64,000 nt of DNA from Ylistrum balloti (GCF_031769215.1 NW_026782003.1:2790001-2854000), one strand, 5' to 3'; shown: positions 1 through 58,546, counted from the first letter of the stretch. Program-made: numbers and translations. The notes: generated from the sequence alone by a model not told the origin.

Positions 1-1366
1 ATACACAAACAAAGGACCAAATACATGACAATTGAAAAAGATCCCTCCATTTCCTCTCAAGACATTTTCATGATAAAATTTCCTTTAATTTTCCAAGATG
101 TCTGCCAAGTGGCCACTTTTTTCAGATTTACACACCTATGGAACAAGGAATTTACTTACAAAAAAGAAAGATTCTTGCAGTACTTTTTGAAGAAGTAGCT
201 ATTTCACACAAATTTTACTTACAGAAATATAAGCAAATGCAATTATATGCATATGGTTGTATTTGAACCTATGTTTTGAGTAGTGTTAAAACCTAATTCA
301 TCGCACAAAAAAACTCCAGGGGAAACATGAATATGAAAAAAGTTTAAAATTTGAGGAACAAGGATGAAAAAAATAGCATAAAGAGTTGTAAGACAGAAAA
401 TGGACCATCTGAAGACTTCAACAATTTGACCACAAATATATATGAAAATAAAATATAAATAAATGGTTTCCCTAAAAAATAAGGGAAAAACTTTAAAAAG
501 TAGAAGGCAATACATGGCTTTGGTATGATATATAGAGTAACAACTGTCTTAAGCTACTTTGATCTCTGTTAAATGATTTAATATCAAAACAATGATTACC
601 TGTCATTCAAACTACACCAACAGGAATATGAAGAAAAAACATACTACATTAAACAGATTATGTGTAAATTAAATAAAACAAACCAAAAATATCAAGGAAT
701 TTTCTGTCACACAACATTTCTGTGGGAGTTATCTCCCTTTGGTCACACTCCTATCGGATCTTCAGTGACAACAAAAGAGTTCCAAGTCATGGCATTTTCA
801 AAGCCATTTCTCTGCATTTGATAATCCCGCATGGCTTGACCTATTTCTTCCTGTGTGTTCATGACGAATGGCCCTGTTCAACGAAACAAAGCGTGTTATT
901 ACCCCTGGAGGTGGATTTCAGAATTTTTCATTTCCTTTGTTTTTTTGTCATTTTTTTTTTTTACTATTTCTGTCTTCTTTTTTTATACAACGTGTAAAAT
1001 TTCAATAGAGCCCATGGTGCAATATTCCTCAGCAGGTCCAGAAACTGATATGGACTGGTACATACTTACAGGCTCACTAACTCATCCAATACAAAAACAT
1101 TGTTGCCAGTAGAAGATACAGAATCAATAATTAGATAAAAACTTGATCATCACTGCTGTGTTGATGTAAGATCACTACAGTGGTATAAAATCTTGTATCA
1201 TTACTAACCACTTTCCCAGTAAGGTATAACATCAATTAGTTTTCATCAACCGCGTAAAAGAAACTTTTTCAATATTCTGTCATATTTGTAAAATACAATG
1301 ATTGATAATCAACAAGAAAATTGAAAAAAGAAATCAGACAAACACATTAATCACACCTTTGTGTAT

Positions 1367-4300
1367 CTAATGCCGACGCCCTTGTTGTTCCTTTACATAT
1401 TCTGACTGCCAAGATCTGACCCCCTCAAATCCATTTTTACCCTGGTGGTAGTCTACCATGGCTTGCTGTATTTCTTGGTTCGTATTCATCACAAATGGAC
1501 CTAGAAAACAGTCAATGGTTCGGTCAAAAGACAGCAAGTCTTGCAAAATTTTATTTATTATAGATTAAGAGCAGCTGAATGGTAAAAACCACTTAGATCC
1601 ACCTATATACAGACCAAGAACGTTGACTCTACTCTCCACATGCTTGAATTAAGTATTGATTCTGTACCAAATCTAAACATTTATTTGAGTCAGGTCTTGT
1701 CGGAAATTTGAAAATATTAGTCCACATTCCATTTCCTAAATACTATTCCTCATAAAAGTAGAGACAGCAGATACAGATGAAATTAGAGTTCTACAAAAAG
1801 ACCTCATCTCTGTTCATCAGGGCTCAATGGTGACTATTTCTGTGTTGGATTTGAGGGGACAGATATAATGCCACTGCAAGTTACAAAATTACTTTCCTAA
1901 ACCATAAGGTCCTCTATACCTCAAAATCACTTCATAACTGGTCTGCAGTGTATTGCTTGACCACTATAGAGAAATAGCTTCATATCCGAGTTTTACTATA
2001 TCTTTTCATGTCCAACAGAGAATTACTCCCTGATCCCCTGAGTGACAGATAAAAGTAACTCTTACATCACATGTTAAAGGACGAAACAAACTTTCAAAAT
2101 GTACAGTCTATATAGACAACAAAAAGCCTCACCGTGTTGGACGATAGGTTCATTCAAAGGTTTGCCTCCTATTAGAACAAAGCGAAGCATTTCTGTACCC
2201 TGAAAGTCATAAAGGGTCAAGTAAAATCTCAGATATGTTAAACAAGTAAATATTTTTCACCTTAGCAAGCATGGCAAAATAGCTTTGTTTTTATTGAAAT
2301 CAGATTGATTTTAACATTTCAGGTTGTCTTTCAGTGAAAAACTCATTACACTTTTGAATATATTGTCCCAAAGATTGACAACAGATTTGGTGGAAAAACA
2401 CTATAACATCTCCCCATGTAAGACCTTAAAATAGTTCATAATACATTTCTGCAGTAATACAGAGGACATTCATACAGCATATCAAAATCAACAAAACGTT
2501 TTTAGATATACTGAACTTTAACTATTGAAGTTTATTTTTGAAGAATAAAATTACAAATGAAACACAATCGAAGAGCTTGGTAGTGCCTCTGTAATGACTG
2601 GATAGACTATTTTATAAATAAACAAATCAATATACCTTATTCTGTACTTCTAGTTGATTCCCTTCTTTGCTGAGGACTACAGTATGATGGGCACTGATTT
2701 CCATCTGCTGTGTGCTGCCCCCTACAGGGTCAAAATGGAGACAACATTAAAAATCTGTCAGTTTTTAGGCTTTTATTTCTATTTCAAAATACTCTTCCAT
2801 ATTTGACATCAATCAGCTAATAAATTCTTCAGAAACCTGTGAGATAAAATTGAAGCTTACAAGTAAATAACAAAATACATTTATACTCAATTATAAAAGC
2901 ATTCAGGTACAGTGTACATGATGGGACAACACAATAAGATATCACACTCACCAAAATGTCCTTTCCCATCAATGGTGTATACAAATGATGTGTACTCGTT
3001 TGGTATTGGCTGGACTAATTTTGAGCCTGGATCCATTTTGAAATCCAGATACATGGTCGAGGTACGTGTGTACACTGGAGACTAAAATAAAAAATAGTTG
3101 TAATTTAAACACCACAAACAAAATTATCTATAACACTATGTTTAGTTTTCATGTAGATATTATTATAAAACATATATACATTATATTTAACACCTTGTCT
3201 TGTTTAAAAATCACAGTGTTATAGAATACGACTTATCACATCAAGTAACACCATGTCTTTTTGAGTCCGCCCTATTAAATCTGATGTCAAGTATGGTATG
3301 GCAACAAGCTGACCAATATCCCATTATATGTACAATATTTATTATACCTTTATGCCAAATGCCTCTCCAGCAATCACCTTCACTGTCACTCCATCCTTGG
3401 TGGTCCGAGGAATGTCCTTGTCCAGAAGTTCCTGATAGGCCGGCTTCATCATCTTATTTTCGGCAGCAAGATTGACCCACAATTGAAGGCCATGGGTCAC
3501 TCCGTCTCCCCATGGCATCTCACAGTGGACAATACCTCGCCCTGCGGTCATCCACTGAAACAAAACCAGTCCATATAAGTCTTCATTATAAATATATGAC
3601 CGGATTAAAGCTATGACTTACAAATAAAGTTATTTTGATATAAACGTAGTGGAGAAAAATATTCACTGCTTTTTAATTATGATGAACATCAGTCAAGTTG
3701 TATGAGTATTTGCAGTATAACAAATATTTATGTACTGTATTGATGTAGTGAATGAATTACAGTTATAACAGAAAGTCATTGGGATGAAAAATGTGGCAAG
3801 TTTATGACCATTCAGCTGTGGTTGACCTCAAAACAAATTCAAGGTGAAGGTCATGGCACATCTCTGTTACAAGTGTAAAGTCAAAAACTCTTCCTCAGTC
3901 AACAACTAGGTTTGTCAAATCATTAGAAACGAAACTGTCCTCTGACCTGAATTGTACGGAAAATAATTTGAGTAGAATGTTTCTGTAAAATTACCCTGAA
4001 ATCATGCTGTTTGACTTTATTTTCATGTGAACTAACGATATAGATGACATTAGTGTCAAATCTGAAAGTATGACTTCATGTCCTTACCTGGAGGTCTCCT
4101 TCATTAATAATACCAGCGTGACCACAGAAGTCCTCATGTCTAACTGCGCCCTTCAGGATGTAGGTCACCTGTAAAGTATGTAAGTATCATACATAACAGT
4201 ACCCTAAGAAAGTAGGTCACCTGTAAAGTATGTGAGTATTATATCTAACTGCGCCCTTCAGGAAGTAGGTCACCTGTAAAGTATGTAAGTATCATATATA

Positions 4301-5664
4301 ACAGTACCCCTAAGAAGATAGGTCACATGTAAAGTATGTGTTTTGTAACAGACTTTCCTGATCACCTGTCCTCACCTGCTACCTTTGTATCACACAATCC
4401 ATGTCACAAAGGACTGGATGGGTATGAGAATTACCTCCAGTCTCTGCCTTATGAATATATCCCTGTTTGTTTAATTTAAAAGTGGAGAAATTAACAGTTT
4501 CAACATAACCTTTTTACAGAAGTCAGAAGACTTGGAATAATATTACCAAGGAACAACATGTATTACAAGGATGTCTAAGACTTTGATACTGGAGCCAGGC
4601 CATTAACCAAGCAACAGTTTAAGGAAAAATCTTACAGTTTCAAACCCTCTGTGGGGATGGTCTGGGAAACCACCTGGCTGTTGTCCTTTAAACTCGTCAA
4701 GCATCAGGAAGGGATCAAGATTCCGCAACTGTCAAGCAACGAATCATTTAAAGTTACAGATCGAAGCATAAATGCATCTTTCTTGTATCAATATTGATAA
4801 TGATTGGGATAATAGGATGCAATACATCAATAACAACAAAGAAAATACCAACATGTCAACAGAATCCTAATCCAAACTCAAATTCAGTAAAACTAGGGCA
4901 AAATAGGAGCAAAGGAAATGTTTACAAGGAGACTCCTGAAAAACAACAAAGAAAATACTAACACATCAACAGAATCATAATCCAAACTTTACAATCCATT
5001 AAACAGTAAAACTAGGGTAAAAAATGACCAAAGGAAAGATTTACTCGCCTACGGAGTCTTAACAATAAAATAGAAAATATAAAACATGTATGTGTAAATG
5101 TTTAGCTGGCATCCTCTTCAGGACCAAATTATTCAGAATGGCCCATACACTAATAAGGTATATCATATACACTATGGGTGGGTTTTTTTCTGAAAGGCTG
5201 GTATTTTGTAACAACAGAATATCAATAATTTTATAATATCTCCTGGGATTCCATATCAGGTAGACTTAAACAAAGTAAAGAGAGAAAGGGATTTTTCTTT
5301 TCAGTGATCCAGATATGTAGATATTGCTGATACCTGTCTAGTACTGTCTATGTAAATTTTGGAGGTTAAAGGTCGATCCTTTGAGTTAATGACATATCTT
5401 GCTTTGTATAAAATAATACTATAACAGTAATACCGTGGTTATTTTCAAAGTAAACTTAGTAGCTTGAATATTTTACCTTTACCTACAATATTAAGTCTCC
5501 TGATTAAACAGGTAACATTTAATATAATCAGTAACTTCTGGCTGAAAAACGGAATTTTCATAATGACTGACCTCTACGCGCCCAACACTCCTGCGCACTC
5601 GAGCCCCAACTCCCTCATCTTGCTCCACACTCAGGACAGTCTTGACCACTGTCTTGGCTGTCAT
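1367..5664 (-). CDS. PIR: Pirin paralog A (iron-binding bicupin, quercetinase-like), 8 coding exons, 296 aa from the conserved ATG (357 aa if ATG 5847 is used)
   Basis: Exons 5572-5664, 4636-4728, 4088-4168, 3348-3554, 2952-3081, 2636-2721, 2133-2199, 1367-1500. All introns are GT-AG with matching phases. Motifs [63 protein letters not shown]. Ends GRRH-TAG. Confidence 0.96.
4163..4340 (-). repeat. About 53-bp tandem repeat (4 units) made of the intron 2/exon 3 junction of PIR-A
   Basis: ggtcac(c/a)tgtaaagtatg recurs at 4163, 4215, 4268 and 4321. On the minus strand this reads catactttacAG|GTGACCTAC, the true acceptor plus the first exon codons. Confidence 0.9.
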
Positions 5665-7734
5665 GCTGGGGATAACTGAACAGTATTGGTTCCTATTAGT
5701 TGATGCTGGAATGAGAGTTCTATACCAAGTGGTCAAGTTACAAGTATTGCCTGGTACATGAGTGTGGGAAGTCTTCAGTACAGCTAACACAGTAGTCAGG
5801 AAAAGTACAGAGTTTTCCTTTTTAATCCTCAGAACACCAGACAACATTCAGTTGATGGCTGTATAAACATGATACAAGTAAACAATTATTGACAAACGTC
5901 ATATACAAACAAAAGGTCCAGAGGGCTGGTATCACTTTCATTTTTCAGCAATACTGGCTAAATACTTCTAATAAATGCAAATTTAAGACAAAAAACTTTT
6001 TTTTTTAATTTTTTTTTTTGTGGTATCAGAGCAAATATCAAACTAGTTATTAAGATGTTAATCAACAAGTTTTAACTGTTTCCAAAAGAAGGCTTTGAAA
6101 TTCTTTCCTTTCACAAGGGGAGTCTTCAATGACCTTAAGACAAAGCCTTTTTGTAAATGTTGGCATTTGCTTCATTTTGAAGTTATGGCAGGGTTATAAC
6201 ACAGCCTGTATTTTCCCTGAGATTAATTTGATCAAAGAGAAAAGGCAGAATGGCACAGATGGCTAATTCTGATCAGATAAACAGTGAAGTCAGCAGGGCT
6301 GACGATCAAATGCCAAAACCAACCTTACATATATGATTATCAAATTAGATCCAAACTGTTGCAATGTAACTCAGGAACTGTTAATGAACCGTGTTCTGGT
6401 ATAATGATCCTAGAAGTGAAGCATGACTGTGTCAGACTTTTTGTCCCAATTATTGTATTAACTACTGCTAAATACAATTGTAGTATATGTTTGCATGTTC
6501 TTACTGATATATGACACCAGGACACATTCTGAATGGTAAGAATGGATTCTTAGAAAATTACTGCAGCCTGAAACAGATTGTATTGTAATGGCAAGCAATT
6601 GCACGTATGTAATATGAAGACATTAAAACATGTTTGTTTGAGATTCATCTGTATAATAAAACACCTAGATTTTTTTCTACATCAATTTTATTTGACAATA
6701 TGAATTTAAAATGCATCAAAACTGCCACTTGTCAGGATATCGAAATGTGAAAACAGCAGTATCATGGTAAAAAAAAAATCTCATTATTATGTAGAGCACG
6801 TTTTGAGGAAGTTGTTAAGTTAATGTCCACTCCACCCCATCCAAATTACTTTCGTGTTCAAATAATTTTAAAAAAAATGTATTGAAATAAGTGAAGAAAA
6901 TGGCAACAGCTGAGGGAAATTGGAAAAAAACAAACAACCAGACACAAGATAATAACTACATAAGTATTTGCATTTTTGTTTTTTTTTGTTTGTTTTTTTT
7001 TTTTTTTTTTGTTTTTTCATTTTATGTTTATGTCCATGTCTGACTATTGCGAGTCTTGATTTCCCATGCATCTAGATTTATCAGATGGTAGTAATTGGGA
7101 TGATATATATCACACAAGTGTATATATACACATCTACATGTATATATATAAACATTCCAGTTTCTCAACTCAGAATTTTTGCCGTGTCATGTTGACCTAC
7201 AAATTCACATCTATATATTTTATTAGTTATATCACGGACTTGTATCTATATTTAAGTCCGTGGTTATATTCCTTGAATGTAAGAAGTTCTAAATGTTAAA
7301 TATTGAAGATTAATCCTAACATCTGGAAAACAGTTCCCACATATATTTATATACACAATTTATACATAAAATGTCACTTTACAGTCCTTACAGGTAGCCC
7401 ATCTAAAAAGGGCGTACCATTCCAAAACGTAATGTGCCAATGTAAAATTTCGTCCGTTTACATTTATATACTGATTATAGTCTTCCTCAGAATAAATCTT
7501 AATATTCTAAGGAATCTATATAATCAGACAAATATAAACACACACACACTTACATGTACATACACATACGGTCGCATTAAAGGTCTACATGTACCTACTG
7601 AACCTGTTACAGTTAATATAAATCTGTATCACACCAAAGCATGATTTTATCATCCTAAACTCTCTATTTCGTTTCCAAAGTATTGCTTGACATCATTATT
7701 ACATGAAATATCATCACACACGTGTTTCACTTAC

Positions 7735-9600: not shown

Positions 9601-11618
9601 ACGAAAAAGATCCAGTATCAATATCGGACCATACCGTTGATATTACTGATTAGATTATGCATTGAATTCACCGTGTCCGGTGAAATGTATTAAAATGTAA
9701 AACATTTTTTTATAAACAGTTGAATTAAGCATTAGCACTAGACAATTTATTAAGTATCATGAAGTTTCAGAGGTGTAAACAATAATGTCTAATTCAACGT
9801 GTTGTTTGAAATTATTTATACACAAAAAAAGGGTCACAACTCCCATAACAAAATGAAAATATCTAAAATTCAAATATATAGTATAAATATTTATACACAT
9901 GCGCAACAGGTGTCATCATAGCGGTATTAGTGCACAGTTATAGATGGATAGACAAAAGAGTGGAGGCCCTAATCCAGTATAACACATACACATTCTCCCC
10001 ATCAACTTTATCACAGGAGATAAAATATGCTTAACTATCACCATTGTAGACCTACCTGTGTAATTTGAACAGATCTGTCAACTGCCTTTTATATTGAGAA
10101 AATACTGACACACAATCTTCTATTACCTAAAGCTACAATGGTTAGACTAATGACTTATTTCTTCTGGTTCTAATGAGAAAACTGTGAATCAGAAGAAACA
10201 CAAACATTGAGTTGAAACGGTCAAAATTAAAGATGGCTGCCATGTGTATAATATAATACCTGATTAAGATCATCCTGTGCTAGTTTCACTGTTAAATTCG
10301 AAGATGTCATATTTTTTTCAACTTTACATACCTGTGGTTCAAGAATTTACCTGCGAAATATAGGAAAGATCCTTACAATACTTCTCAAATAGTTATTTTA
10401 CACAAACTTAACGTACATAAATATATAAGTACTCTATTATTTGCAATCTAATATAATTGCCTTTATATTTATGCTTGGAGTAGTGTTAAAAATTAATTTA
10501 CGCCACGAAATATGCAGGGGAAACATACATATAGAATAATATACAAGTTAAGGAAGATGCTTGACAAAAATTAGGATATATAGTTTCCAGACAGAAAATA
10601 GGCCATCTGCACCCTTCAACAGTCTCACAGGTACTTGTTTATCTTCAGATATCTTTAATGTGCGTCACAATTGTTTATTAAAGTCAAATATAAAGAAATG
10701 GTTTCCCTTGAAAAATAAGGCGTTAACTTAACAAAGTAAAAGGCAACACGTGGCTTTGTTATGATATATAGGGTAACAACTGTATTAAGCTGCTTTAATC
10801 TCCGTTAAGTAAATTTAATATCAAAACAATGATTAACTGTCGTTCAAACTTAACCAACAGGAATATAAAGAAAAAACATTCTGCATTAAGCATATTTATG
10901 TGAAAATTAAATAAAACAAACAAAAAAAGTAAAAAAAAAAATCCGTCTTTAGCAGACGTTAAATTGTCTGTAGCTGCTCCCAACATTTCTGTGGGAGATC
11001 TTGGAAGTTATCTTCCTTTTGTCACACTCCTATCGGAACATAATGATTCAAGGCATTTTCAAAGCCATTTCACTGCATTTGATAATCCCGCATGGCTAGA
11101 CCTTTTCCCTCCGGTGTGTATATGACGAATGGCCCTGTTCAATGAAACAAAACCTCTGATTAGGCCGGGAGGTGGATTATTTTTCACTTCTGTTTTGACA
11201 CATGGTGTAAAATTTTAATAGAACCGTTGGTGCAATATTTCTAATTAATATCGACAGATACATAATTACAGGCTCACTAACTCATCCAATACAAAAACAT
11301 TGTTGCCAGTAGAAGATACAAAATCAATAATCAGATAAAAACTTGATCATCACTGCTGTGTTGATGTAAGATCACTACAATAATATAAAATCTTATATCA
11401 TTACTAACTACTTTCCCAGTAAGGTATCAATTAGTTTTCATCAACCGCGTCAAAGAAACTTTTTCAATATCCTGTCATATTTGTAAAATAACATGATTGA
11501 TAATCAACAAGAAATTAAAAATATTCTATGTATATTATGGCTCAAAATTTGTAACAAATACCAGTCTAGTTAGTAATCATTGAAATCGGGTAAAGTTATC
11601 AATCACACCTTTGTGTAT

Positions 11619-27631: not shown

Positions 27632-29693
27632 CTATTCCAGTATTCCATACTGATGGAGTTTGAACAAGAGACCCTTATGCCAGACTTTGTCAAATGCCTT
27701 GGACAAATCGCAAAATACAACACAAGAATATTCATTATTATCCAAAGAGCTAACAATACTGTGATACATTTCTATCAACTGATAGACTGTGGAGTGGCCA
27801 GGAAGGAAACCAGATTGATACTTGTAAAAAATATTGTCTCTAGCAAAGTTAAAAATATATTTAAAGACACATCTTTCCATAGTTTTTGACAAGCAACTTA
27901 GCAAAGAAATAGGCCTATAATTTGAAGGAGCATGAGCATCTCCTTTTTTAAATACTGGTAAAACGTGTGTTTTTTTCCATTCCGAAGGGAAAACAGCATC
28001 CCTTTGAGACCTATTAAATAATAATGTAAGAGGTTGTGAAATAGTTCTGGCTGTAGCTTTTAGCATACGGGACTAATCCTGTCTGGAACAACAGCTTTCC
28101 CTATGTCAAGAGTAGATGAAATATCATAAACATCTTTTTCTTCGATCATAAAACTAGAAAGTGAATTACTGCATTTTCTGACGAAGTTTGGCAGATTTGT
28201 ATTAGAATCATCAGTACTGGAGACAGAAGTGAAGTAATTATTGAGGATTTCAACCTTTTCCTGGTCACAAACTGCCATTTTGGTAATACCATTAACATTG
28301 TATTCAAGAGGAGGTATAAAGCGAGGAGAGGAGGAGAAAAAGCTGTTAAGAATTTGCCAAAAGGCACGGGGATTTTCAGTTTTTGCCGTAGAGACACGTG
28401 ATTCCAAATTACAGAAGAAATCGGCCTTGGCCTTCTTTTTCACATTATTTACTCTGTTTCTCATACCCCTGTATGAAGACCAGTCTTCTTGGCGTTTAGA
28501 ACGTAATGCCATTTGTTCGAGTCTGTCCCTTATACGACAGTGTTTACATAAAACCGAATCGAACCAGGGTTTGTCGGAGGGACGGATAGTAACTGTAGAA
28601 TTTGGTATAAAGATTCTCGCCAGATCTAAAAATTGCCTAGTGAAGTTGGAAACAGCATTAGAAATTAAATCGTGCCAATCTACTGATGATAACGAACCAT
28701 TAAGCCCAATGTAGTCTGCCCTATTATAATTCCACACAAATCTCTCGTAAGATGTTTTACAATTATAAGAAAATGATAAATTTATAAAAGTCGCTTTATG
28801 ATCACTAACAGTATTGTCTACACTGAATGTCCCACTATCGAGACATTTAATATCCGAAGAAATAAATATAGGATCTAAAAGTGTAGCTGTGTCAGTGGTT
28901 ACACGAGTAGGCTCGGTAATAACGTTTAAGAGGTGATAGTTGGTTACTAATGTATCTAACTTATTATTTCTGTGTAACAAATCAACATTAAAATCGCCAA
29001 GGATAACTATATCAGAACAATAATCAGAGAGAGTCTCAATGCACCACTCGAAATTTTGATAGTGTTTCTGGAGTTTGGTGGTCTATAAAATAATCCAACC
29101 ATGATACGTCTATTGTGGCACATAACTTCCGCCCAGATGCATTCTAGATTTGCCGGTGTAAACTCGAGTTTACGACAAAATTTAATAGAATCTGAAAAAT
29201 ATATAAGAACACCTCCACCAAAAGCATTTCTATCTTTACGTATAAAAGTGGAATAGTCAGGAATAGAAAGAGAATCACTTACGACTGAATCGTCTATATG
29301 TGTCTCCGAAAAGTACAAAATGTCAAAATCACTGATAAAAGAATCGAGAAAAGAAAATTTATGTCTAATGCTTCTAGTATTTAAGTGGAGTAAACTCAAG
29401 TCAAAGTTGCCATGATTGTCAGGACCAGGGTTTGTTTCAACATCTCCACTTAGAATTAAGATAATATATAGAGAGGGAAAGTCAGCACTATAAAAACCGG
29501 ATATACATATATCTAGACAATGATAAACATGTTGGAAAATCCATATGGAATATATCTTAGTCATGTCTTTAAGTAATGTTAAAAGAAATAAAAGTAAATA
29601 TGCTGGGTTCCAAGATATTTTACATGAGGACGAGTAGATACTACCGTTAAACCTTCCGATTGACGCCCTATAATCCTCTAAGGAATTACCCAT
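27632..29693 (-). mobile_element. Non-LTR retrotransposon (CR1/L2-group LINE) ORF2: 2A-like peptide, APE endonuclease, partial RT; frameshifted and 3'-truncated
   Basis: Three consecutive ORFs carry GDVETNPGP, HLNTRS, FSETH, GGGVLIY, YRPPN, ILGDFN (read across a frameshift), SDH, PWFD, NYRPISLLS, QSGF and DLSKAFDKVWH. It stops before the YADD motif. Confidence 0.93.
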
Positions 29694-38932: not shown

Positions 38933-39726
38933 GCTGCATGGGTACCAGAGAACTGGGTTCCTTAGAACGAAGTACAAAAGAACCAGGTACCACAGTACTG
39001 GATAACGTAAAACTGAGTACCACTGAGCTGATTACAACAGAAATAAACAGGTTTAAGTCTCATAATGTATTATATGAAGATGAGTCTGTCAGTTATAACC
39101 TGCAAATCATCATAGTAAAACATTAAGGACCAATCTCCCTTAACTTCATGACAGCACTGTATAGGGGAAAACACCTGTTGCATTTTATTTTCATCATTTT
39201 TGCCATTTTCTCCGATGTGGCAAAAACAAAAAATTAGCTAAGGATTAACGCTAAAGCTGAAACATATCTTAAAATGTCTTTTAGGTCAAAATTATCACTG
39301 GGTGAAAATCAAAAGTTTTATGCGAGGGCGAAAAAAAATCCCTGATTAAATGATTCCCTGTATATGATACAAAGACAACTAAATTCCCAGTACATTCCTA
39401 AACATGTATATATATTACGACTCGCCAATCTATTAGTTTGCATTTTTATAAACACTAATATGAATACAGCTATACATATTTATTTATAGAGCTTACTTCA
39501 TAGAATCTTCTAAAGCGCCAGCAGAGTATCACCAGGACAGATATACCAAAGCTACTTTTACACATCATATGGGTCAAAATCACATGTAGTTCTGATGACA
39601 TCTGATCAATAGAATACCATTACAACCAAATCAAGATGTTGGTTGGTTGCTTAATGTATCAAACATGTTTTCACTGTTATCATCATTTAGCAGACACAAG
39701 GACAGTGGACTTAAATAATATCTCTG

Positions 39727-40717
39727 CCTCCAGTGAGACATGGCCATGTCGGTCAAGTATGTCCTCCAGTGAGACATGGCCATGTTGGTCAAGCATGTCC
39801 TCCAGTGAGACTCTGCCATGTCGGTCAAGTATGTCCTCCAGTGAGACAAAGCGATGTCAGTCAAGTATGTCCTCCAGTGAGACATGGCAATGTTGGTCAA
39901 GCATGTCCTCCAGTGAGACAAAGCGATGTCAGTCAAGTATGTCCTCCAGTGAGACATGGCAATGTCGGTCAAGCATGTCCTTCAGTGAAACATGGCCATG
40001 TCGGTCAAGTATGTCCTCCAGTGAGACAAAGCGATGTCAGTCAAGTATGTCCTCCAGTGAGACATGGCAATGTTGGTCAAGCATGTCCTCCAGTGAGACA
40101 TGGCCATGTCAGTCAAGTATGTCCTCCAGTGAGACATGGCCATGTTGGTCAAGTATGTCCTCCAGTGAGACTCGGCCATGTCAGTCAAGTATGTCCTCCA
40201 GTGAGACATGGCCATGTTGGTCAAGTATGTCCTCCAGTGAGACAAAGCGATGTCAGTCAAGTATGTCCTCCAGTGAGACATGGCAATGTTGGTCAAGCAT
40301 GTCCTCCAGTGAGACATGGCCATGTCAGTCAAGTATGTCCTCCAGTGAGACATGGCCATGTTGGTCAAGTATGTCCTCCAGTGAGACTCGGCCATGTCTG
40401 TCAAGCATGTCCTCCAGTGAGACTCGGCCATGTCTGTCAAGCATGTCCTCCAGTGAGACTCGGCCATGTCTGTCAAGCATGTCCTCCAGTGAGACATGGC
40501 AATGTCAGTCAAGCATGTCCTCCAGTGAGACTCGGCCATGTCGGTCAAGCATGTCCTCCAGTGAGACATGGCAATGTCAGTCAAGCATGTCCTCCAGTGA
40601 GACTCGGCCATGTCTGTCAAGTATGTCCTCCAGTGAGACACGGCCATGTTGATCAAGTATGTCCTCCAGTGAGACATGGCCATGTTGGTCAAGTATGTCC
40701 TCCAGTGAGACATGGCC
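39727..40717. repeat. 36-bp minisatellite, about 27.5 units, with a 216-bp higher-order repeat; three reading frames open
   Basis: Unit cctccagtgagacatggccatgtcggtcaagtatgt. The same variant series starts at 40021 and 40237. Confidence 0.97.
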
Positions 40718-41444
40718 GTATCAGTTAAGTAAGCGCACTGGCAAACACGATAACTCTATAATTATGCTATCACTGTAATGAATGCAGGTGTTGATGTCCC
40801 AGCCTATTTCTATAGAGGTCTAATGAAAAACATATCATAATCATAAACTTCCCTAATATCCCACTATCATCAAACAATAACTTGGAGTCAGGTTCTCCTA
40901 AATTTTATCTGTAAAACATTTCCAGTTAGTTAAATGTGTCATAGAGATAAAATAGATATGTCTTCCATTGCAATTAAGAATCAATTAAGTAATGATCAAA
41001 CATTAAATTTCTGGTTTCCTTCCAAATCACATTTCATATACTTTTAGATCAAGAAAATTCTGAGCTTTAGAAGTCATTTATAATCACTGGTATCAAATGA
41101 AACAACACATTTGTAATAAAACGACATAAGTTTTAGAATAGGGTGTAACCCCACACACATCATATTTATCTAGCTGTAAATCTATGACTGTCAAATAGGT
41201 CTACCTATATCTGATACCGTTATGCTGCTCATTAGCATAACCCACTTCAAACACACCCACAACATCAGGTGTATGTCAGCATAAACAGTACATTATGACT
41301 TTGACCCATACATCATTTATTACAGTACCCTGTAGTGAATTTATACAAGTTAATATCAACATCCAACATAGCATTCAAAAGCACATTCTATAATATATCA
41401 CGGTCAATTCTCAACATTAGACACACTACCTAATTACAAAAACA

Positions 41445-44400
41445 TCACCGATTTGTTAGGTAGTCTGACTTCCAAGTTTTAGCGACTTCAAATCCTTTTT
41501 GTTTCAGCTTGTAGTCCAGAATGGCTTGTTGGATCTCCTCTTCAGTATTCATTACAAACGGACCTAAATTATAGAGGGGAAAAAAACATAAAACAAAAAT
41601 TCTATTATCAGTATTTATCACTGAATTAAGCATACAGTGGTGTTGATCTAGAAAACATCAGTCTGAACTGGTTAATGTTTTATTTGTGTCAGATATAAGT
41701 TGTACCAATTATGTTAATTTTATTTACGTGTTTTCGATTCTTCACTAAAGATAAATCCTCCCTACTTTGTCTCCTCTAACAGATTAAGGTCCTCACATCC
41801 TATCCCAAGTCATCAAACAAACAAAGATTCCTCATTTAATATCCATATGATTTGTGTTGATTGTACATTGAATAAATCTGATCAATCATTTTTTTCTATC
41901 TTCCCTCGTAAAAGTGTAAAATAATGTTATTTGTGAGTTGTTCATTTTACGTAAACACATGTAACTCAAGTCTAAATCAATGTAAATGTTGTCACTTATC
42001 AAATTTCAGATCAATAAAAGATATTGTCACTTATCAAATTTCAGATCAATCAAAGATATTGACTTTTGCCAAATTTCAGATCAATAAAAATACTGACACT
42101 TGCCAAATTTCAGATCAATAAAAATATTGACACTTGCCAAATTTCAGATCAATAAAAATATTGACACTTGCCAAATTTCAGATCAATGTTATTGTTGACA
42201 CTTACCATGGGTAGCAACTGGTTCACCTAAAGGCTGACCACCTATTAACACAAAATGACATTCCTCTGGTCCCTGAAATATCAAATATTACAGTTTCAAC
42301 ACATGTCATTTGAACGAGACACTGTTGTGTGAACATCACTTGTACACACATAGCTATGGGTATTGAGTTTCTTAATGGTTTATTTCACACCTTTGTTACC
42401 TTGAAGGAAGGTCAAGGAAAATTTTGAACTTGAGAAGAAGTCGAAAATGTGTTTTCAAGATGGCAACCATGTTGGATTTCGGACCAACCCGAAATTAACA
42501 CACTTTGGTCAGGATCATGTCATGATCATTTTAGGTAAGTTTCAGTTCAATGAGACATATAGAACTTGAGAAGAAGTTGAATATGTTTACGATGGATGAC
42601 GGACGACGCCGGACAAACGGCAATCGCAATAGGTCATCAGACCCTTCGGTCAGACGATGTAAAAATCCCTTATGAAGTGATTTATGATAATATTCCTCAC
42701 ATAATATACTACTACACACTATAACAGGTTAGCTATGATAATATTCCTCACATAATATACTACTACACACTATAACAGGTTAGCTATGATAATATTCCTC
42801 ACATAGAATACTACTACACACTATAACAGGTTAGCTATGATAAAATTCCTCACATAAAATACTACTACACACTATAACAGGTTAGCTATAATAATATTCC
42901 TCACTTAAAATACTACTACCTACACACTATAACAGGTTAGCTATGATAATATTCTTTACATAATATACTACTACACACTATAACAGGTTAGCTATGATAA
43001 TATTCCTCACATAATATATTACTACACACTATAACAGGTTAGCTATGATAAAATTCCTCACATAATATACTACTACACACTATAACAGGTTAGCTATGAT
43101 AATATTCCTCACTTAAAATACTACTACACACTATAACAGGTTAGCTATGACAATATTCCTCACATAATATACTACTACACACTATAACAGGTTAGCTATG
43201 ATAATATTCCTCACTTAAAATACTACTACACACTATAACAGGTTAGCTATGATAATATTCCTCACATAATATACTACTACACACTATAACAGGTTAGCTA
43301 TGATAAAATTCCTCACATAATATACTACTACACACTATAACAGGTTAGCTATGATAATATTCCTCACTTAAAATACTACTACACACTATAACAGGTTAGC
43401 TATAATAATATTCCTCACATAATATACTACTACATACTATAACAGGTTAGCTATGATAATATTCCTCACATAATATACTACTACACACTATAACAGGTTA
43501 GCTATGATAAAATTCTTCACATAATATACTACTACACACTATAACAGGTTAGCTATGATAATATTCCTCACATAAAATAAATACTACTACACACTATAAC
43601 AGGTTAGCTATGACAATATTCCTCACATAAAATATATACTACTACACACTATAACAGGTTAGCTATGATAATATTCCTCACATAATATACTACTACACAC
43701 TATAACAGGTTAGCTATGACAATATTCCTCACATAAAATATATACTACTACACACTATAACAGGTTAGCTATGATAATATTCCTCACATAATATACTACT
43801 ACACACTATAACAGGTTAGCTATGATAATATTCCTCACATAAAACACCACTACATACTATAACAGGTTAGCTATGATAATATTCCTCACATAAAATACTA
43901 CTACACACTATAACAGGTTAGCTATGATAAAATTCCTCACATAAAATACTACTACACACTATAACAGGTTAGCTATGATAATATTCCTCTCATAAAACAC
44001 CACTACATACTATAACAGGTTAGCTATAATAATATTCCTCACTTAAAATACTACTACCTACACACTATAACAGGTTAGCTATGATAAAATTCCTCACATA
44101 AAATACTACTACACACTATAACAGGTTAGCTATGATAATATTCTTCACATAATATACTACTACACACTATAACAGGTTAGCTATGATAAAATTCCTCACA
44201 TAGAATACTACTACACACTATAACAGGTTAGCTATGATAATATTCTTCACATAAAATACTACTACACACTATAACAGGTTAGCTATGATAAAATTCCTCA
44301 CATAAAATAAATACTACTACACACTATAACAGGTTAGCTATGACAATATTCCTCACATAAAATACTACTACACACTATAACAGGTTAGCTATGATAATAT

Positions 44401-47400
44401 TCCTCACATAAAATACCATTACCTACACAATAAAACAGGCTAGAGATTACCTTGTTTACTGCAACTAAGTTTTCCCCTTCATCATTGAGAATGAGGGCAT
44501 GGTGAGGGCATCCCTCGGTCTGATTCCCTTCTGGTCCTAATCATTGAGAAAAAGAAACCAATCAACAGTAAATATGGGCAGTGACATTGAGTAAAAAATA
44601 TCAGCAACGGTGAGTAAAAGTGAAACAAAACAAGGTACAGATGTGTATACATCTGAAATGTTCAGTTCCTGAAATTCATTGTAAATGGGTAGAAAATGTG
44701 GGATTTAATTGTTCCAATATTAATTTTTGAATATATATGTAGATTGTTGTTTATTACTTACCAAACAAGGCTTTACCACTGAGTACATAGACAAATGAAT
44801 TCCACCCTTTCTTAATAGGCTGAACCAGTTTACCATCTTTCTGCATCTTGAAGTCTAAGTACACTGTTTGTGTTCTTGTCAACATTGGCGACTACAAAAG
44901 TTGTCATTAAAATCTAATCACACACAAATTTATGATTAAAATATATAAGAGGATGAGATTCAACAGATTCACAATCATCATCCAGTTCAATCGTACAACA
45001 CAAAATCATTGTGTTAACAAGATATATAAGCACAAAAATGTACACAGAAATAATCCATTTACCAAAAACAATCCTTTTTTCTCATATTTATATATATATA
45101 TATATAAACCAGGAACACATATTAATGAGAGAAAAAATACAGCCACTACTTACTAATACAGAGATCAAACTGACCTTGACACCTTGAGATTCCCCAGCAA
45201 TGACCTTGACAGTGGTGTTGTCCTTGGTGTTCCGTGGAATATCCTTGTCTTGGAGTTCCTGATAGGCAGGATCAATCATCTTGTCTTTGCTGGCTAAATT
45301 TACCCACAGCTGAAGGCCATGAACCTCCTCTGTACCAGAGGGCATCTCACAATGGACAATCCCTCTACCAGCAGTCATCCACTTCAAAATAATTATATAC
45401 AACTTTCACTTCTCATGATCCTCCTGTTTTGATGGATAAAGACTGAGAGTACAAGAATTTCATAATCAGTGATGTTTTACAGTAAGCATATACTGTAATT
45501 CATATAAATCTTAAGTTGAATCTATTTCTTAAAATCCTTGTGTGTGTACTTTTAAGAATCACTGTTTCCAGATGGTTCTGTTATTGGATAAGTTTTGCAC
45601 TTTAATTGTCTGTCCATCTGTCCATCCATCATTCTCTGTATCACACCGATACCACTATTGCGTAGCTGTGATCATGATCTGGACATGAGCAGGCTCAAAT
45701 TTCAAAATGTCACAGAATCAAAAAGCTGATTTGTTTTATGATAAAAAATTTTACAAGTATGTAAATATTCATCCACACCAGCATTATCAACACCGGTTTA
45801 AACTTTGTCCTTGACCTTGGGACAGAAGACAATATTCTAAAAGTAAATCCACCAGAATATACTTTGTATGTTTCCAATCGATATAAGGTTTATAATGTAC
45901 TATAATGTATAATCCTTAAGCACAGGGAATAGTATGTCAATAGGTCTAGTGAAAACAGTCGTCAGTGATTGGTTCCCTGTTCCCTAATGTACTTCTAGTA
46001 ACTTTAATCATATACTGTACCCTAAACTACTGACACCTGTATAAATCTCACCTGAACATCACCAGCATGAAGGGTTCCCTTGTGACCACAACAGTCCTCA
46101 TGCATCCCAGCACCTTGCAGGACATATGATACCTGTAGATCATAAATCAGCAAATGAGAATTTTTGAAAATTTAACTCATATAACAGAAGGTAAACATTA
46201 TTACCTTGATTTAAACTCATTTGTTTCTAACAATGAATTAACTATGAAATTGTTGTTCAGCTAAAAGATCCAAAGATCAATGAGGCAGGGACACAGACAG
46301 GAAAGAAGAGGTCCACATCAACTACAGTAGGGGAGTTGGGGAAACAGAGTGGATGCTGGAACTGTGAGATGTAACATAACTGGGAACACCTGTCAGAAGA
46401 CAATGAGTCACCTGTTCACACTTCCAACAGTGGGATAAAGGCTAACATTCAGGAGCAACAGCAGGTGATTCAGAAGGAAGTACAGAGAGTAGAAGAGGAT
46501 AGATGTGTGAACTGTGCAATCAGGATATAGGGGCCTGATGGAACATCACAGATAAAAGCTTACATCATCTACATAGGCTGAATTGTGGTAGATAGAACCT
46601 TTCAGGATCTCATTCATGTTATGATCATTATATGACACTCTCGCATTGCCCATTAATCTGCACCTGTAAGGAATGGCCCAATGTTCCACATCTTGTCTGG
46701 GTGCAAGAAAGACAATAACCTGTTGGACAGAGCTCAATCATGGGAGATGAGGGAGGACTTGGACGAAAAGCATGTCTTCCTAGACATTGTTGAAACAACA
46801 CTGATGCCTGATATCAAAACTAATAATTGCAGTTGATCTTAAAGTATTATGTGAAGAAGGCTGTGATGGAGCCCATGATGGGAAGAACACCAACAATGAT
46901 GAGTAGATGGTGGCAAAGCACAGGTTAAACAGAAAGATTGTATAGCTCTTCTCAGTCGAGGTTTTTGCAGACACTAGGAGTCACAGGAGGAGATAGAAGT
47001 GCAGCCATTAGATGTTTGGAGGTAGCTGCCAAGAGAGAATCATGTTCGCTATTGCAATGTCAAGACAAGCCAATGTGGAAGTAGACATAGAAGAGTTGTA
47101 GTTTAGTCACCCCTGTAGAGGATGTTGTGGTTTAGTGGCAAAATATCTGAAAATCTGACATTGACAGCTGCTTCACAACAGAAACATACCAGCGACTTAA
47201 TCTACCCAAGATTTGTCATAGAATGTAGAAGAGCATCATATTATGTAAGTCATCATCAATCAAATGACTGGCAGTATAAAATATATTGATTTAAATCTGT
47301 ACTTACAGTCTCAAAGCCTCGGTGTGGATGGTCAGGAAACCCTGCTGGTGGTGTTATGTAAAATTCATCAAGCATCAAAAAAGGATCCAGGTAGTCAACC

Positions 47401-49704
47401 TAGGAAAGTTAAATAAAAAATATACCATTATTTATTTTCTTTATTTCAACAAATATTTGTTATCTCATGCATGTGTTAGCCCTGAATTGTAAGACTTCCT
47501 AATTCCATTCCAGTTCCAGTGCTACCAGACAAAGTCTTAATTTCTTTCCTCTGGCAACTCTAGGGCCTATGATAATTTGATTATGAATAACTGTTTAACC
47601 GATGCTAGTTTTTCATATAGTATATTACACTGAAGAAATTCTATATTCAAACTAAATTCCAATATCATACCAGGCCATTATGAATTGAACAATACTGGCT
47701 TGAATGTCTAGAATCTAGAATGGTACATAAATCAACTAATTGCTCATTATTACAGACTTCTGAGATTCCAATGCTATTACATATAACTGCTTGTATTACT
47801 AACATAATTATCCTCTTCATTCCACTGCTGTATCATTCAACTGCTTCGTTACATAGCCACTACATTGCACTGCTGCAACATATACCTGCTGTATAACTTA
47901 GCCCTGACATTCCAATATTGTGTTATACTACTGCTATATATACAGTTGTGGTAATGCATAACACACCTAAAACCTTTGTATGCACAACATAATGTGTGCA
48001 CACACTCACTATACAGTATCTAGTGCTCAAACATTTTGTAGTTTTGTAAAAATTGTTGACTATTATTACAGATTGAAAATTAAGTGAAAAAATTTATTAA
48101 TAGCTACAAAGGTATATCAACATTGATCAGTAATTATAGAAAGTCTTTTTTCAATACAACAGTTTTCGCAATAACACTTAACCATGCATTATTTAGTCTT
48201 TCCATCAGATAGTTTTACACTTCGGTGTGCCACGAGCAACAAAAATTACCTGTATACAGGTAATTATCCTGCAACTGGCACTGCCATTGTTGGAATACAC
48301 CTGCCACATATATTTTCGCTGTATTTTGCTGTGACGGAAAACAGCTGTATTATGTTTAACAATAATCATAACTGATAAAATAAGCAATTTTATATTGTAA
48401 TGAACAATTTTATTTTAAAAAATTCATAAAATTGCTGTCACATCTGTTGAAGTTTGGAACTATATTTTGGTGCAAAGCAATTATTTTGCCATACCTCATC
48501 AGGTAAAATTCATGGTAATATCAACATCAGGTAAGTAAAGATTGAACAACAAGAAGTTTTGATTGCTGAATTTAGGTCAATATTGCAAGATAAATAGAAT
48601 ATAAGCTGTATTTTAGCTCTGGACAGAAAGACAAAAGTGGCAAGCTTTTGTCTTCCTTCACCTTCGCCAAAATTCAGGTTATATTTTAACATACTGACCA
48701 TGTATTATCTCTAAGTTAACAAAATAATAGAAAAATGAGAGTAACACAGAGGTAATGAAAAAAAAATATTCCTGAACCACTGTATGAGATTTTAACTATT
48801 TTAAGAATTTATATCCCCTGTGCTGTATAACTGCTCAATAATATATCCTTAGGTAGCAGTTTCTCGGTGTGGCCATGGGTGACATTTTTGTTATTTAGAT
48901 TACCCTATTATAAAGGTTTGAATTAAAATTTTAAAAAATAAATCATTGCTAAAATTGGTCTTGTCATGTTTAATTGGACAATGTGGGGTTTCATTTTTTT
49001 CAGAATAATATTTTAGCTTTGTGTTTGAGATTTCAATTTGGGCAGTCTCGAATCTGTGTCTACGCACAAAAAACTAGCTTTACAGGAAGTCAAATTTTCA
49101 TAGTGTTTAGATGTGGTCATATTGTGAAGGATTTCCATGCTGTGTTGGAATTTGCTGAAATGTAAGTAATTTATTACCATGACAGTGTTGTTGATTTTAA
49201 GACAGGTCTTCAGAAATAAATTTCTTCTATAAAGTTACAGTGTTCGGTTGGAATAAGCAGTATTGTTTTGCATTTTAAGCATTTTTTTTAGTTGGTAACC
49301 ATGGCAATCACATGTCAGAAATCAGAGAAATGTTTTGATTTACACAAATTTTATCTCTCTACTATTAATGTAATGGTTATGTAGTTTGTAAATATATATA
49401 TATATGTAATTATGTGTTTTTCATAATTTCAGGAAAAATGCAAATTAACTGTTTCCTGCTACCTTAACATCCCAATGCTGTATCATGCAACTGCCTTTTA
49501 TAGCATATATACCCTGACATCCCAAAGTTGTACTGTACAAATGCTTAATATCTAAGATGTACTCTTGGCATTCAGATTTCAATGCTGCACCATACAACTA
49601 CTATAACATACCCCTGGCATTCCAATGCTACGCCGCACAACTGCACCAATATCCTCCTTCTGTTCCTCAGCATACACATCCTGTTTTACAGTTTTGACCG
49701 ACAT
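41445..49704 (-). CDS. PIR: Pirin paralog C (divergent), 8 coding exons, 291 aa
   Basis: Exons 49612-49704 (MSVKTVKQDVYAEEQKEDIGAVVRRSIGMPG), 47307-47399, 46052-46132, 45175-45381, 44762-44891, 44451-44536, 42206-42272, 41445-41563. Exon sizes 93/93/81/207/130/86/67 match A and B. All introns are GT-AG; DHPH and HCE are intact. Confidence 0.95.
41985..42200. repeat. 34-bp tandem repeat (about 6 units) abutting the PIR-C exon 7 donor
   Basis: Unit gacacttgccaaatttcagatcaataaaaatatt, with starts at 42061, 42095 and 42129. Confidence 0.9.
42415..42665 (+). mobile_element. Terminal fragment of a Helitron/MITE-like non-autonomous element
   Basis: gagaagaag-containing subunits, a (gacg)-like microsatellite, then a short imperfect hairpin ggtcatcagacccttcggtcagacgatg and aaaaa. 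This resembles ends of common bivalve elements (from recall). Confidence 0.5.
42686..44430. repeat. 51-bp minisatellite, about 34 units, filling PIR-C intron 6
   Basis: Unit gataatattcctcacataatatactactacacactataacaggttagctat, with starts at 42686 and 42737. The array ends about 20 nt from the exon 6 donor. Confidence 0.97.
46270..47100 (+). mobile_element. Decayed 3' fragment of an REL-endonuclease non-LTR retrotransposon (HERO-like) in PIR-C intron 2, antisense to the gene
   Basis: Broken + frames give QVIQKEVQRVEE, EPFRISFML*SLYDTL (46595), HILSGCK (46687-46707), TTLMPDI (46795-46815), VDLKVLCEEGC and GVTGGDRSAAIRCLE. The order matches recalled HERO ORF C-termini. Confidence 0.6.
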
Positions 49705-56566: not shown

Positions 56567-58546
56567 ATGCCGAAAATGAACGACCCGTTGCAGTGTGGAC
56601 TGTGTTTAAAACGTCACAGAGATCCGCGAATTCTAACCTGTTTCCATAGTTTTTGTCGGGAATGTATAGAAAAGCTTATATCTTCAAAGAAGTACAAAGT
56701 GTCTTTCCCTTGTCCCCTTTGTCAAACGGAAATAGGCATTCCAAAGGCAGGGACCAAGACTTACCCCGAAAACTTCTACATCCGGGCTATTCAGGCCACT
56801 GCAGCATTCTCAACTATCTCTATGTGTGACACTTGTAACAAAACGAAGGAAGAGAGCGCGAGCTCAAGGTGTTTAGAATGCGAATGTAACTACTGTAGCG
56901 CGTGCACAGCCCGCCATTTTGAAACCGAAACAACAAAAGAACACCATCTTATAGAACTGTGCAAACCGGAAACAAAGTCGATAACAAATTTGACTCATAA
57001 AACATTTTGCGAAAAACATAAAAATGAAGAGACGAAATTTTACTGTATGCTCTGCGAGATGCCAGTTTGTAAGGAATGTGTATCAAAAGTGTCTGATCAC
57101 AAAGGGCACCGGTACAAGAGCATCGCAGAAGGCGCCAAGGAAAAGAAAGATCTCATTTCTCCTATTATCAAGAGTATGCACGAGTATTTACCGGTCCTTG
57201 AAGAGTATCTAGAGGACATCAAATCCTCCAAGAAGATGCTTGCTGATTACGCTTCCGACAGCATCAAAGAAATAAAAGCAAGATGCCAGATGCTTCATGA
57301 TGAGATAGAAAAGATTAGTAAATCGTTGGAGGAACAAGTGCAGAAGAATGAAGAGAAGGAGAACCAACGAATGGATAAACACATCCAACTGATAGAAAGA
57401 CTGCTAAAATCTTTGTCGTATACAACAGGATCGTCAGAGGACATCACCAACCTCGCCAGCGACAGCGAATTCGTTCTGATCTGCGCTAAACTGCAGAACA
57501 GGTTCAAGCGGATAAACCAAGAAGTTCCAACTTCCGGTCTTATCAGTTGTGAAAGCAGCAACTTCCACAGTGGGGATATGCAGGGCAAGAATTTGCACGA
57601 AATGATAGGCTATTGTGATGAAACTGATGTAAAGATGCCGTTGTTGCCCATTCCTTGGGGTCTCCGAATGGCTCTATCATTTGAGGTAACTCTTATGTAC
57701 AGTTTTAAGGTTTCCGAATCCATGGACACGATACATGCGATTGCACCCGTATCAGAAAAGGAAGCCTGGATATGTTGTGGATGGGGGACCAACAAGATGG
57801 ATCTGTGGACAAGAGAGGGAGAGAAAAAGAATACGGTAACATTACCTATACAAGTTGATGATATCTGCGTTAAACCTAACGGTGAGATTCTTGTGTCCAG
57901 TTACGACGGTAAGAAGATTGTTAAACTAGACAAAGACCTCAAACCGGCCGATTTCGTAAAGCTGAACTGGTATCCGGGCGGGATGACGTACTCCAAGAAA
58001 AAAGAACTCCTGGTGTGTGCAGTGGACAGCTACGTCACAACACGTTCTAATACGTCACGGCGTATGGTGATACGAATCAAAGATGATGGTACAGTGCTGG
58101 ATCAGATAGAAGATAACGGCTTCAATGAGGTATTCTGCGCCCCCTATCGGCTGTATGAGAACATGATTGGGGACATATGTGTGACAGATCGTGAAGAAAC
58201 TAATGTCAGGGTCACAAGTCTGACGATGGATGGCATCATCAAACAGACATACACCGGTCCGAAAGAGGTAGTCATGAAGAAAGCATTCAATCCGTTTGGC
58301 GTCGTATCGGACAAATATGGTCACGTGATCGTGTCAGACTGGAGTAACCACGCAATTCATTTGTTGGATATAAGTGGTCAGTTCATTGGCTTTCTACTCA
58401 CTGAGAAAAATGGTATCCGAGGACCGAACGCGCTTGCTCTCGACAAAGAAGGTCATCTTTGGGTAGGCGATACAAAGTCAACAGTCTGGGTATTCCAGTA
58501 TCGACGGAAGGCTGATGAGCATGGTTCGTCTAACTCTTCAACCTAG
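56567..58546 (+). CDS. TRIM-NHL E3 ubiquitin ligase-like protein (RING, B-box1, B-box2, coiled coil, NHL-type beta-propeller), 659 aa, single coding exon
   Basis: C3HC4 RING CGLC..CFHSFCREC..CPLC; B-box CDTC..CLEC..CSAC..H..H; B-box CEKH..YCMLCEMPVCKEC..H..H; C-terminal PFGVVSD..IVSDW and GPNALALD..LWVGD repeats. An upstream acceptor cctgcAG| at 56461 is followed by an in-frame TGA before the ATG. Confidence 0.93.
   Translation: MPKMNDPLQCGLCLKRHRDPRILTCFHSFCRECIEKLISSKKYKVSFPCPLCQTEIGIPKAGTKTYPENFYIRAIQATAAFSTISMCDTCNKTKEESASSRCLECECNYCSACTARHFETETTKEHHLIELCKPETKSITNLTHKTFCEKHKNEETKFYCMLCEMPVCKECVSKVSDHKGHRYKSIAEGAKEKKDLISPIIKSMHEYLPVLEEYLEDIKSSKKMLADYASDSIKEIKARCQMLHDEIEKISKSLEEQVQKNEEKENQRMDKHIQLIERLLKSLSYTTGSSEDITNLASDSEFVLICAKLQNRFKRINQEVPTSGLISCESSNFHSGDMQGKNLHEMIGYCDETDVKMPLLPIPWGLRMALSFEVTLMYSFKVSESMDTIHAIAPVSEKEAWICCGWGTNKMDLWTREGEKKNTVTLPIQVDDICVKPNGEILVSSYDGKKIVKLDKDLKPADFVKLNWYPGGMTYSKKKELLVCAVDSYVTTRSNTSRRMVIRIKDDGTVLDQIEDNGFNEVFCAPYRLYENMIGDICVTDREETNVRVTSLTMDGIIKQTYTGPKEVVMKKAFNPFGVVSDKYGHVIVSDWSNHAIHLLDISGQFIGFLLTEKNGIRGPNALALDKEGHLWVGDTKSTVWVFQYRRKADEHGSSNSST

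Follow-up and report, generated by a model that had tools for sequence, protein, structure and literature searches.

The genomic stretch of the scallop Ylistrum balloti analysed here (GCF_031769215.1 NW_026782003.1:2790001-2854000; 64,000 nucleotides, hereafter the window) contains three pirin genes, PIR-A, PIR-B and PIR-C, all on the minus strand. The start-codon exon of PIR-A contains an upstream ATG (5847-5845) that is in frame with the conserved pirin start codon (5664-5662), and the 183 nucleotides separating them form a stop-free extension of 61 codons. Comparison with other scallops and with oysters indicates that this extension is very probably a genuine conserved coding sequence. It probably corresponds to a cleavable secretory signal peptide followed by a disordered linker, which would route part of the pirin produced to the secretory pathway. 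The long open reading frame (ORF) is not new, and the public annotation, an automated RefSeq prediction, already includes a 357-residue form; what appears to be new is a pirin with a conserved, predicted targeting extension and a nested internal start.

The extension and its two start codons

The long RefSeq models of PIR-A both start at the ATG at 5847, isoform X1 (XP_060065270.1) having 357 residues and isoform X2 (XP_060065272.1) 356 residues, and every residue of both proteins was placed at identity on the window. The N-terminus of the extension is fixed by an in-frame TGA (5850-5848) that directly abuts the upstream ATG, and the DNA of Mizuhopecten and Argopecten shows the same TGAATG arrangement. 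The upstream start is in a weak context and the downstream start has A at -3, as in every species for which DNA was compared. A candidate 3′ splice-site AG is located at 5860-5859 and would place a separate, non-coding 5′ exon farther upstream, and an AG is present at the equivalent place, 11–18 nucleotides upstream of the ATG, in Mizuhopecten and Argopecten. The initial annotation, made from the sequence of the window, had described the 61-residue extension on this strand, the positions and spacing of its two starts, T at -3 upstream and A at -3 downstream, and an ATG situated 11 nucleotides into its exon. The first three were reproduced; the AG fits the last, and the splicing of an oyster mRNA (below) supports an acceptor at 5858.

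The reported composition of the extension was likewise recovered, with six Lys or Arg residues, one acidic residue, 15 Ser or Thr residues and the hydrophobic run VLFLTTVLAVL at residues 14–24. These are arranged in the n/h/c layout of a signal peptide (Table 1). The n-region is positive in the scallops compared, the net charge before residue 13 being +2 in Ylistrum and ranging from +1 to +3 among the remaining pectinids. The best 10-residue mean Kyte-Doolittle hydropathy of the core is 2.72, and the uncharged run spans 12 residues (13–24). Cleavage could occur at either of two candidate sites, after the nearly invariant T26 or after position 29 (T, A, A and G in the four pectinids); the former has L at -3 and a very short c-region, and the latter has S, F, Y or T at -3 in the pectinids. 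The linker contains two cysteines, of which C56 is invariant and C36 nearly invariant in the alignment of pectinids and oysters. AlphaFold2 gives the extension no structure (predicted local distance difference test score, pLDDT, below 50 for residues 1–58, compared with above 90 in the pirin body), and a Pfam scan of PIR-A returned no match within it.

The body of PIR-A is that of an ordinary iron-binding bicupin pirin. It matches Pfam Pirin (PF02678; residues 82–177) with 105.9 bits against a gathering cut-off of 26.1, and Pirin_C (PF05726; residues 230–337) with 113.8 bits against a cut-off of 27. The metal ligands H116, H118, H160 and E162 (long-form numbering) are invariant in a 44-sequence alignment including fish, Xenopus and invertebrate pirins. 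In the AlphaFold2 model, residues 60–357 form a bicupin fold of two beta-barrels together with a C-terminal helix, and most of their pLDDT values exceed 90.

The window is AT-rich, and at 2–4% of its positions the upstream frame stays free of stops for 61 codons or more; similarly, 3% of shuffled versions of the 183 nucleotides remain open. A single open frame is thus not significant on its own, and the evidential weight comes from conservation in other species.

Conservation in scallops, oysters and other phyla

Extensions of 61–63 residues in the same frame are present in Mizuhopecten yessoensis, Pecten maximus and Argopecten irradians. Codon-level tests used the DNA of Ylistrum, Mizuhopecten and Argopecten, with Pecten compared as protein. 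The ratio of non-synonymous to synonymous substitution rates (dN/dS) for the extension is 0.35 between Ylistrum and Mizuhopecten (Fisher test of synonymous versus non-synonymous changes, p = 0.002), 0.53 between Ylistrum and Argopecten (p = 0.03) and 0.25 between Mizuhopecten and Argopecten (p = 4e-5); the pirin body has ratios of 0.06–0.11. All four indels in the Argopecten extension are whole codons, second codon positions differ least often among the pectinids, and every pectinid and oyster orthologue aligned retains the hydrophobic core. The extension dS is 0.7–1.0 between pectinid genera, and a neutral sequence at this distance would not remain open in four genera. The initial annotation had named frame conservation and dN/dS in orthologues as checks, and a chance-open untranslated region (UTR) as the refuting outcome. 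With the frame shared by the scallop genera and the oysters, ratios of 0.25–0.53 and triplet-only indels, the extension does not behave as such a region.

A search of public sequencing runs returned no RNA library for this scallop; the only run containing this stretch, in DNA-like contigs, represents a second haplotype or individual that is ~2% different. Its extension has four single-nucleotide polymorphisms (P47L, N51K, Y55H and one synonymous) and neither an indel nor a stop, and small indels are present in the flank upstream of the extension. Such variation fits a coding region that is under relaxed constraint but still intact, and is weak evidence either way.

PIR-B (11025-17212, minus strand; start codon at 17212) is an intact pirin gene encoding the short form only, with the residues of its 296-residue product (XP_060065188.1) placed at identity. 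The bodies of PIR-A and PIR-B differ with a dS of 0.14 and a dN/dS of 0.125, and the two genes are recent tandem duplicates, both under selection. As described in the initial annotation, the homologous AUG of PIR-B (17376) lies 164 nucleotides upstream of the start codon and out of frame, forming a 17-codon upstream ORF (uORF), and the in-frame region upstream of the PIR-C start (49704) contains three stops. Its statement that PIR-A alone has the extension is correct within the window and fails beyond it, where the extension is ancestral. With Mizuhopecten and Argopecten as outgroups, the 5-nucleotide and 14-nucleotide gaps of PIR-B and both of its in-frame stops are derived, so that the restriction to PIR-A reflects loss in PIR-B and not gain in PIR-A; the 14-nucleotide deletion takes out the hydrophobic core. 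The extension regions of the two copies have diverged by 14.6%, with 7, 8 and 9 changes across the codon positions, and the 20 polarisable substitutions are distributed 14 on the PIR-B lineage and six on that of PIR-A. One reasonable reading is that the duplicates may be dividing two ancestral products between them.

Oysters have a colinear extension of 53–59 residues (Crassostrea virginica, C. gigas, Ostrea edulis and Saccostrea cucullata), and they share with scallops the hydrophobic core, a K/R-T, one Cys, a Pro and, just ahead of the canonical Met, another Cys. The DNA of the extension is too diverged between scallops and oysters for a usable alignment; hhalign comparison of the extensions alone gives a weak but consistent match (E = 0.003, HH probability 10%) in which both cysteines are aligned. 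The 348-residue long protein of C. gigas (the RefSeq long models include XP_011422049.1) was found on 223 assembled contigs. Comparison of a C. gigas mRNA contig (L006) with genomic DNA reveals a 163-nucleotide non-coding first exon spliced to an exon that starts 1 nucleotide before the homologous ATG, and because this spliced contig contains it, the extension is present in mature oyster mRNA. The same gene in C. virginica has an annotated 298-residue short isoform (X3).

Annotated long pirins of 327–370 residues are also found in venerid clams, Mya, Haliotis, Littorina, Lingula, amphioxus and the echinoderms (sea urchins, sea stars, a brittle star, a crinoid and a sea cucumber), and the Tegillarca model is truncated at 282 residues yet has the extension. 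All 25 tabulated long pirins have an uncharged N-terminal hydrophobic run of 10–21 residues, with a best 10-residue mean hydropathy above 2.2 in 22 of them, and 17 contain an N-x-S/T sequon within the extension, often directly before the canonical Met. Inspection of annotated models identifies isoforms with classical-looking signal sequences in the tunicate Phallusia and the frogs Pyxicephalus and Mixophyes, and signal-peptide-like N-termini on pirins of some zygomycete fungi (e.g. Linnemannia). Exon-sized ORFs running upstream of the pirin start, recovered from other organisms by an exhaustive profile search with the 92 residues that the extension and the canonical part of its exon encode, were not counted because these were called only when the upstream frame was open.

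Met is kept at the canonical start in all 36 long pirins examined, which are related sequences and not 36 independent events. This retention across phyla would otherwise be hard to explain, suggesting that the canonical codon is still a start. Together with the weak upstream AUG in the three pectinids with DNA, it makes the dual-start design put forward in the initial annotation plausible.

Predicted function and alternative explanations

PIR-A would be the Ylistrum orthologue within an ancient class of pirin genes in which the start-codon exon encodes two nested N-termini. Initiation at AUG 5847 would give a pre-protein of 357 or 356 residues, of which residues 1 to ~26–30 would constitute a cleavable Sec-type signal peptide and the next ~30 a disordered linker with two conserved cysteines and an N-glycosylation sequon, followed by the bicupin body. 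This long form would enter the endoplasmic reticulum (ER) and be either secreted or sent to an endomembrane compartment. Ribosomes scanning past the weak AUG would initiate at Met62 (AUG 5664), which is in good context, and make a 296-residue cytosolic or nuclear form, with alternative transcripts such as those annotated in oysters as another potential source of the short form. After the recent tandem duplication, PIR-B lost the extension and now encodes the short form only. Signal-peptide function, the cleavage site, glycosylation and the dual-start mechanism are all predictions from sequence features. Entry of part of the pirin into the secretory pathway is the likelier outcome, and the use of both starts from one mRNA is a more tentative proposal with somewhat less than an even chance of being correct.

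Several observations weigh against a secreted long form. Constraint on the extension is relaxed, with amino acid identity between genera of 41–59% compared with 79–85% in the body, although this is usual for signal peptides and linkers. Three of the four polymorphisms in the second individual are non-synonymous, including one at the nearly invariant P47. Two pectinids have an aromatic residue at -3 of a candidate cleavage site, Argopecten lacks both C36 and the N37 sequon, and Pecten lacks the sequon only. By a simple hydropathy heuristic, ~5–10% of random ATG-initiated ORFs of at least 60 residues in the window are as hydrophobic or signal-peptide-like (~5% signal-peptide-like). Gene predictors pick the longest ORF, so the annotated long forms, however many, do not independently prove translation. 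The oyster 5′ UTR exon (L006 1–164) contains four AUGs with short uORFs before the extension AUG, which therefore need not be the first in its mRNA; these uORFs suggest translational control of the long form. Full-text literature searches, including proteomic and cell-biological reports, found no secreted, signal-peptide-bearing or mitochondrial animal pirin.

The extension could be a non-coding leader that lacks stops by luck and has been annotated through the choice of the longest ORF. This is consistent with the frequency of such open frames in the window, where random ORFs are often hydrophobic, and with an A–B divergence that equals the synonymous rate of the body and is spread evenly over codon positions. 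Indeed, an open UTR was at first clearly favoured on the basis of the non-triplet indels between PIR-A and PIR-B, and was dropped because the outgroups show these indels to be losses in PIR-B. The A–B divergence is also mostly on the PIR-B lineage, and the maintenance of the frame in four pectinid genera at dS 0.7–1.0, the conservation of both the start and the preceding stop, dN/dS values significantly below 1, triplet-only indels and a colinear oyster extension with the same cysteines leave this explanation largely refuted and highly improbable. It is also quite unlikely that the upstream start serves solely to tune the output of short pirin, with a long product that has no role in localisation. 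The weak upstream context and the intervening out-of-frame AUG conserved in pectinids, as well as the several uORFs in the oyster leader, would suit such regulation, but purifying selection on the amino acid sequence and the recurrence of the core architecture across phyla in unrelated sequences are not expected of a purely regulatory ORF.

Two further alternatives accept the extension as a targeting peptide and differ in the destination or fate of the protein. The initial annotation had allowed either a signal peptide or a mitochondrial presequence; its targeting-type character is borne out by the n/h/c features, and of its two options the mitochondrial one is the less favoured. Import into mitochondria or another organelle instead of the ER is suggested by the four basic residues, one acidic residue and many Ser and Thr residues among the first 30. 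However, the core is an uninterrupted, uncharged run of 11–12 residues with a mean hydropathy of 2.7 and not an amphipathic, Arg-rich helix, the first 25 residues contain one Arg and one Glu, and the paired cysteines and N-x-S/T sequons of the linkers matter only in the secretory pathway. The long forms of sea urchins, frogs, a tunicate and clams also open with typical short hydrophobic signals, some with acidic residues close to the N-terminus. Judged by composition, a presequence consequently fits less well, and is about as improbable as a solely regulatory role. An uncleaved signal anchor, in which the core would tether pirin to the ER or another membrane, is somewhat less remote and still unlikely. 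The imperfect cleavage sites (an aromatic -3 residue in two species, and a very short c-region after T26) are consistent with an anchor, as is the position of the hydrophobic run 20–30 residues into some long forms (Amphiura, Holothuria). It is disfavoured because the core is short, with 12 residues in Ylistrum, 12–13 in the other three pectinids and 10–21 across the 25 tabulated proteins, mostly less than a membrane span of ~20; small -1 residues are also conserved at the two candidate sites. A cleavable secretory signal peptide thus remains the favoured interpretation of the extension.

Pirin has been studied almost entirely as a nuclear and cytosolic iron protein, proposed to be an NF-kB co-regulator, a quercetinase and a drug target, and its main cellular role is still disputed. 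Human PIR is a 290-residue nuclear and cytosolic protein without a targeting peptide; PIR-A has the same bicupin body and Pfam domains but 61 extra N-terminal residues with signal-peptide architecture. The RefSeq long pirins (XP_060065270.1, XP_021356648.1, XP_033742731.1 and XP_011422049.1) are the same protein or its orthologues, and are automated predictions for which no functional comment was found; within the literature searched, the extension is not discussed in any paper. Dual-localised proteins produced by leaky scanning similarly have two in-frame AUGs in one exon, the first weak and the second good, with a targeting-type peptide between them, although here the use of both starts is a prediction, and short-isoform transcripts, as annotated in oysters, may do part or all of the work. 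Quercetin 2,3-dioxygenase of Aspergillus is a secreted, glycosylated extracellular bicupin dioxygenase; it belongs to a different cupin family from pirin, and the two are likened by function only. A recent preprint describes quercetinase activity of pirin and its modulation of cellular quercetin, and argues that the robust activity of pirin is this control of quercetin and not NF-kB co-activation (bioRxiv 10.1101/2024.12.03.626411). Pirin is among the detoxification genes induced in a Biomphalaria diet study that does not address localisation (PMC13276955), and pirin localisation is likewise not addressed in a paper on an oyster ‘cupin-like polypeptide’ (PMC13129452). That the preprint and the snail study fit an enzymatic role of a secreted form is speculation.

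A signal-peptide isoform under selection appears to have been kept in most lineages of marine invertebrates and even in frogs. If so, part of the ancestral job of pirin would lie outside the cell or along the secretory pathway, pointing to an enzymatic role (e.g. on dietary or environmental flavonols) over a transcriptional one. A broader conjecture, with slightly under an even chance of being correct, is that pirin was ancestrally a dual-destination protein in bilaterians. A signal-peptide form that is secreted or lumenal, glycosylated and possibly a flavonol-degrading dioxygenase acting outside the cytosol would be nested in one exon with the classical cytosolic or nuclear form; the pair would have been kept in molluscs, brachiopods, echinoderms, amphioxus, tunicates and frogs, and lost in amniotes, where its loss would explain why it has gone unnoticed, with the Ylistrum duplicates now splitting the two functions. 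The PIR-A and PIR-B pair also offers a natural example of a duplicate that has lost a predicted targeting peptide.

Gene structure and neighbouring features

The coordinates of the PIR-A features and of the extension remnant in PIR-B are listed in Table 1. The distinct C-termini of PIR-A isoforms X1 and X2 come from two alternative last coding exons (1367-1501 and 746-874, respectively, minus strand), and the Mizuhopecten pirin gene has three candidate last exons (L004 12248–12364, 13269–13397 and 16225–16323). The X2-type tail (W-N-S-F-V...E-D) is also present in long pirins of Haliotis cracherodii and amphioxus, and because of this recurrence the alternative tail may be old.

Table 1. Features of PIR-A and of the PIR-B leader in the window (positions counted from the first nucleotide of the window).
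Feature	Coordinates	Strand	Comment
N-terminal extension of PIR-A	5665..5847	-	residues 1-61 of both RefSeq isoforms, 100% identical
Candidate 3′ splice-site AG	5859..5860	-	exon start would be 5858, ATG 11 nucleotides into exon
In-frame TGA	5848..5850	-	directly 5′ of upstream ATG
Upstream start codon	5845..5847	-	weak context aactgaATGt; T at -3, T at +4
Putative n-region, signal peptide	5809..5847	-	residues 1-13 (R7, K9, K10, E11), net +2; assigned from n/h/c layout
Hydrophobic core	5776..5808	-	residues 14-24, VLFLTTVLAVL
Putative c-region/cleavage zone	5758..5775	-	residues 25-30; cleavage position predicted from alignment
Out-of-frame AUG between the two starts	5757..5759	-	8-codon uORF, weak context; conserved in Mizuhopecten
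Linker	5665..5757	-	residues 31-61; C36, C56, sequon N37-L-T39; predicted disordered
Canonical pirin start (Met62 of long form)	5662..5664	-	A at -3
Canonical coding part of PIR-A start exon	5572..5664	-	31 codons; donor GT at 5571-5570
Remaining PIR-A coding exons, span	1367..4728	-	residues placed at identity; Pfam Pirin and Pirin_C matches
PIR-A codon blocks	4728-4636, 4168-4091, 3557-3348, 3081-2950, 2719-2636, 2199-2134, 1501-1367	-	
Alternative last coding exon, isoform X2	746..874	-	residues 314-356 of X2, 100% identity
Degenerate extension remnant, PIR-B	17213..17395	-	5-nucleotide and 14-nucleotide deletions; TAA 17251-17249, TGA 17230-17228

The third pirin copy, PIR-C (41445-49704, minus strand), is much more diverged (its first coding exon shows 54% identity), and its start exon seems to begin at an AG acceptor ~130 nucleotides upstream of the ATG. 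A cytochrome P450 gene (20283-26111, minus strand) lies between the pirin copies, with Pfam p450 matches on two exon ORFs (E = 5e-47 and 4e-15); the juxtaposition of pirins and a P450 could hint at a xenobiotic-metabolism neighbourhood. A retrotransposon fragment is located at 27632-29693 (minus strand), in which one ORF matches RVT_1 (E = 7e-17) and two adjacent long ORFs have no Pfam match. Approximately 1.1 kb of tandem short repeats at 39631-40728 leaves several reading frames of each strand open over long distances, with repeated 8-residue units. To the right, a single-exon ORF of 659 residues (56567-58546, plus strand) has RING, B-box and NHL repeat matches and is TRIM-NHL-like.

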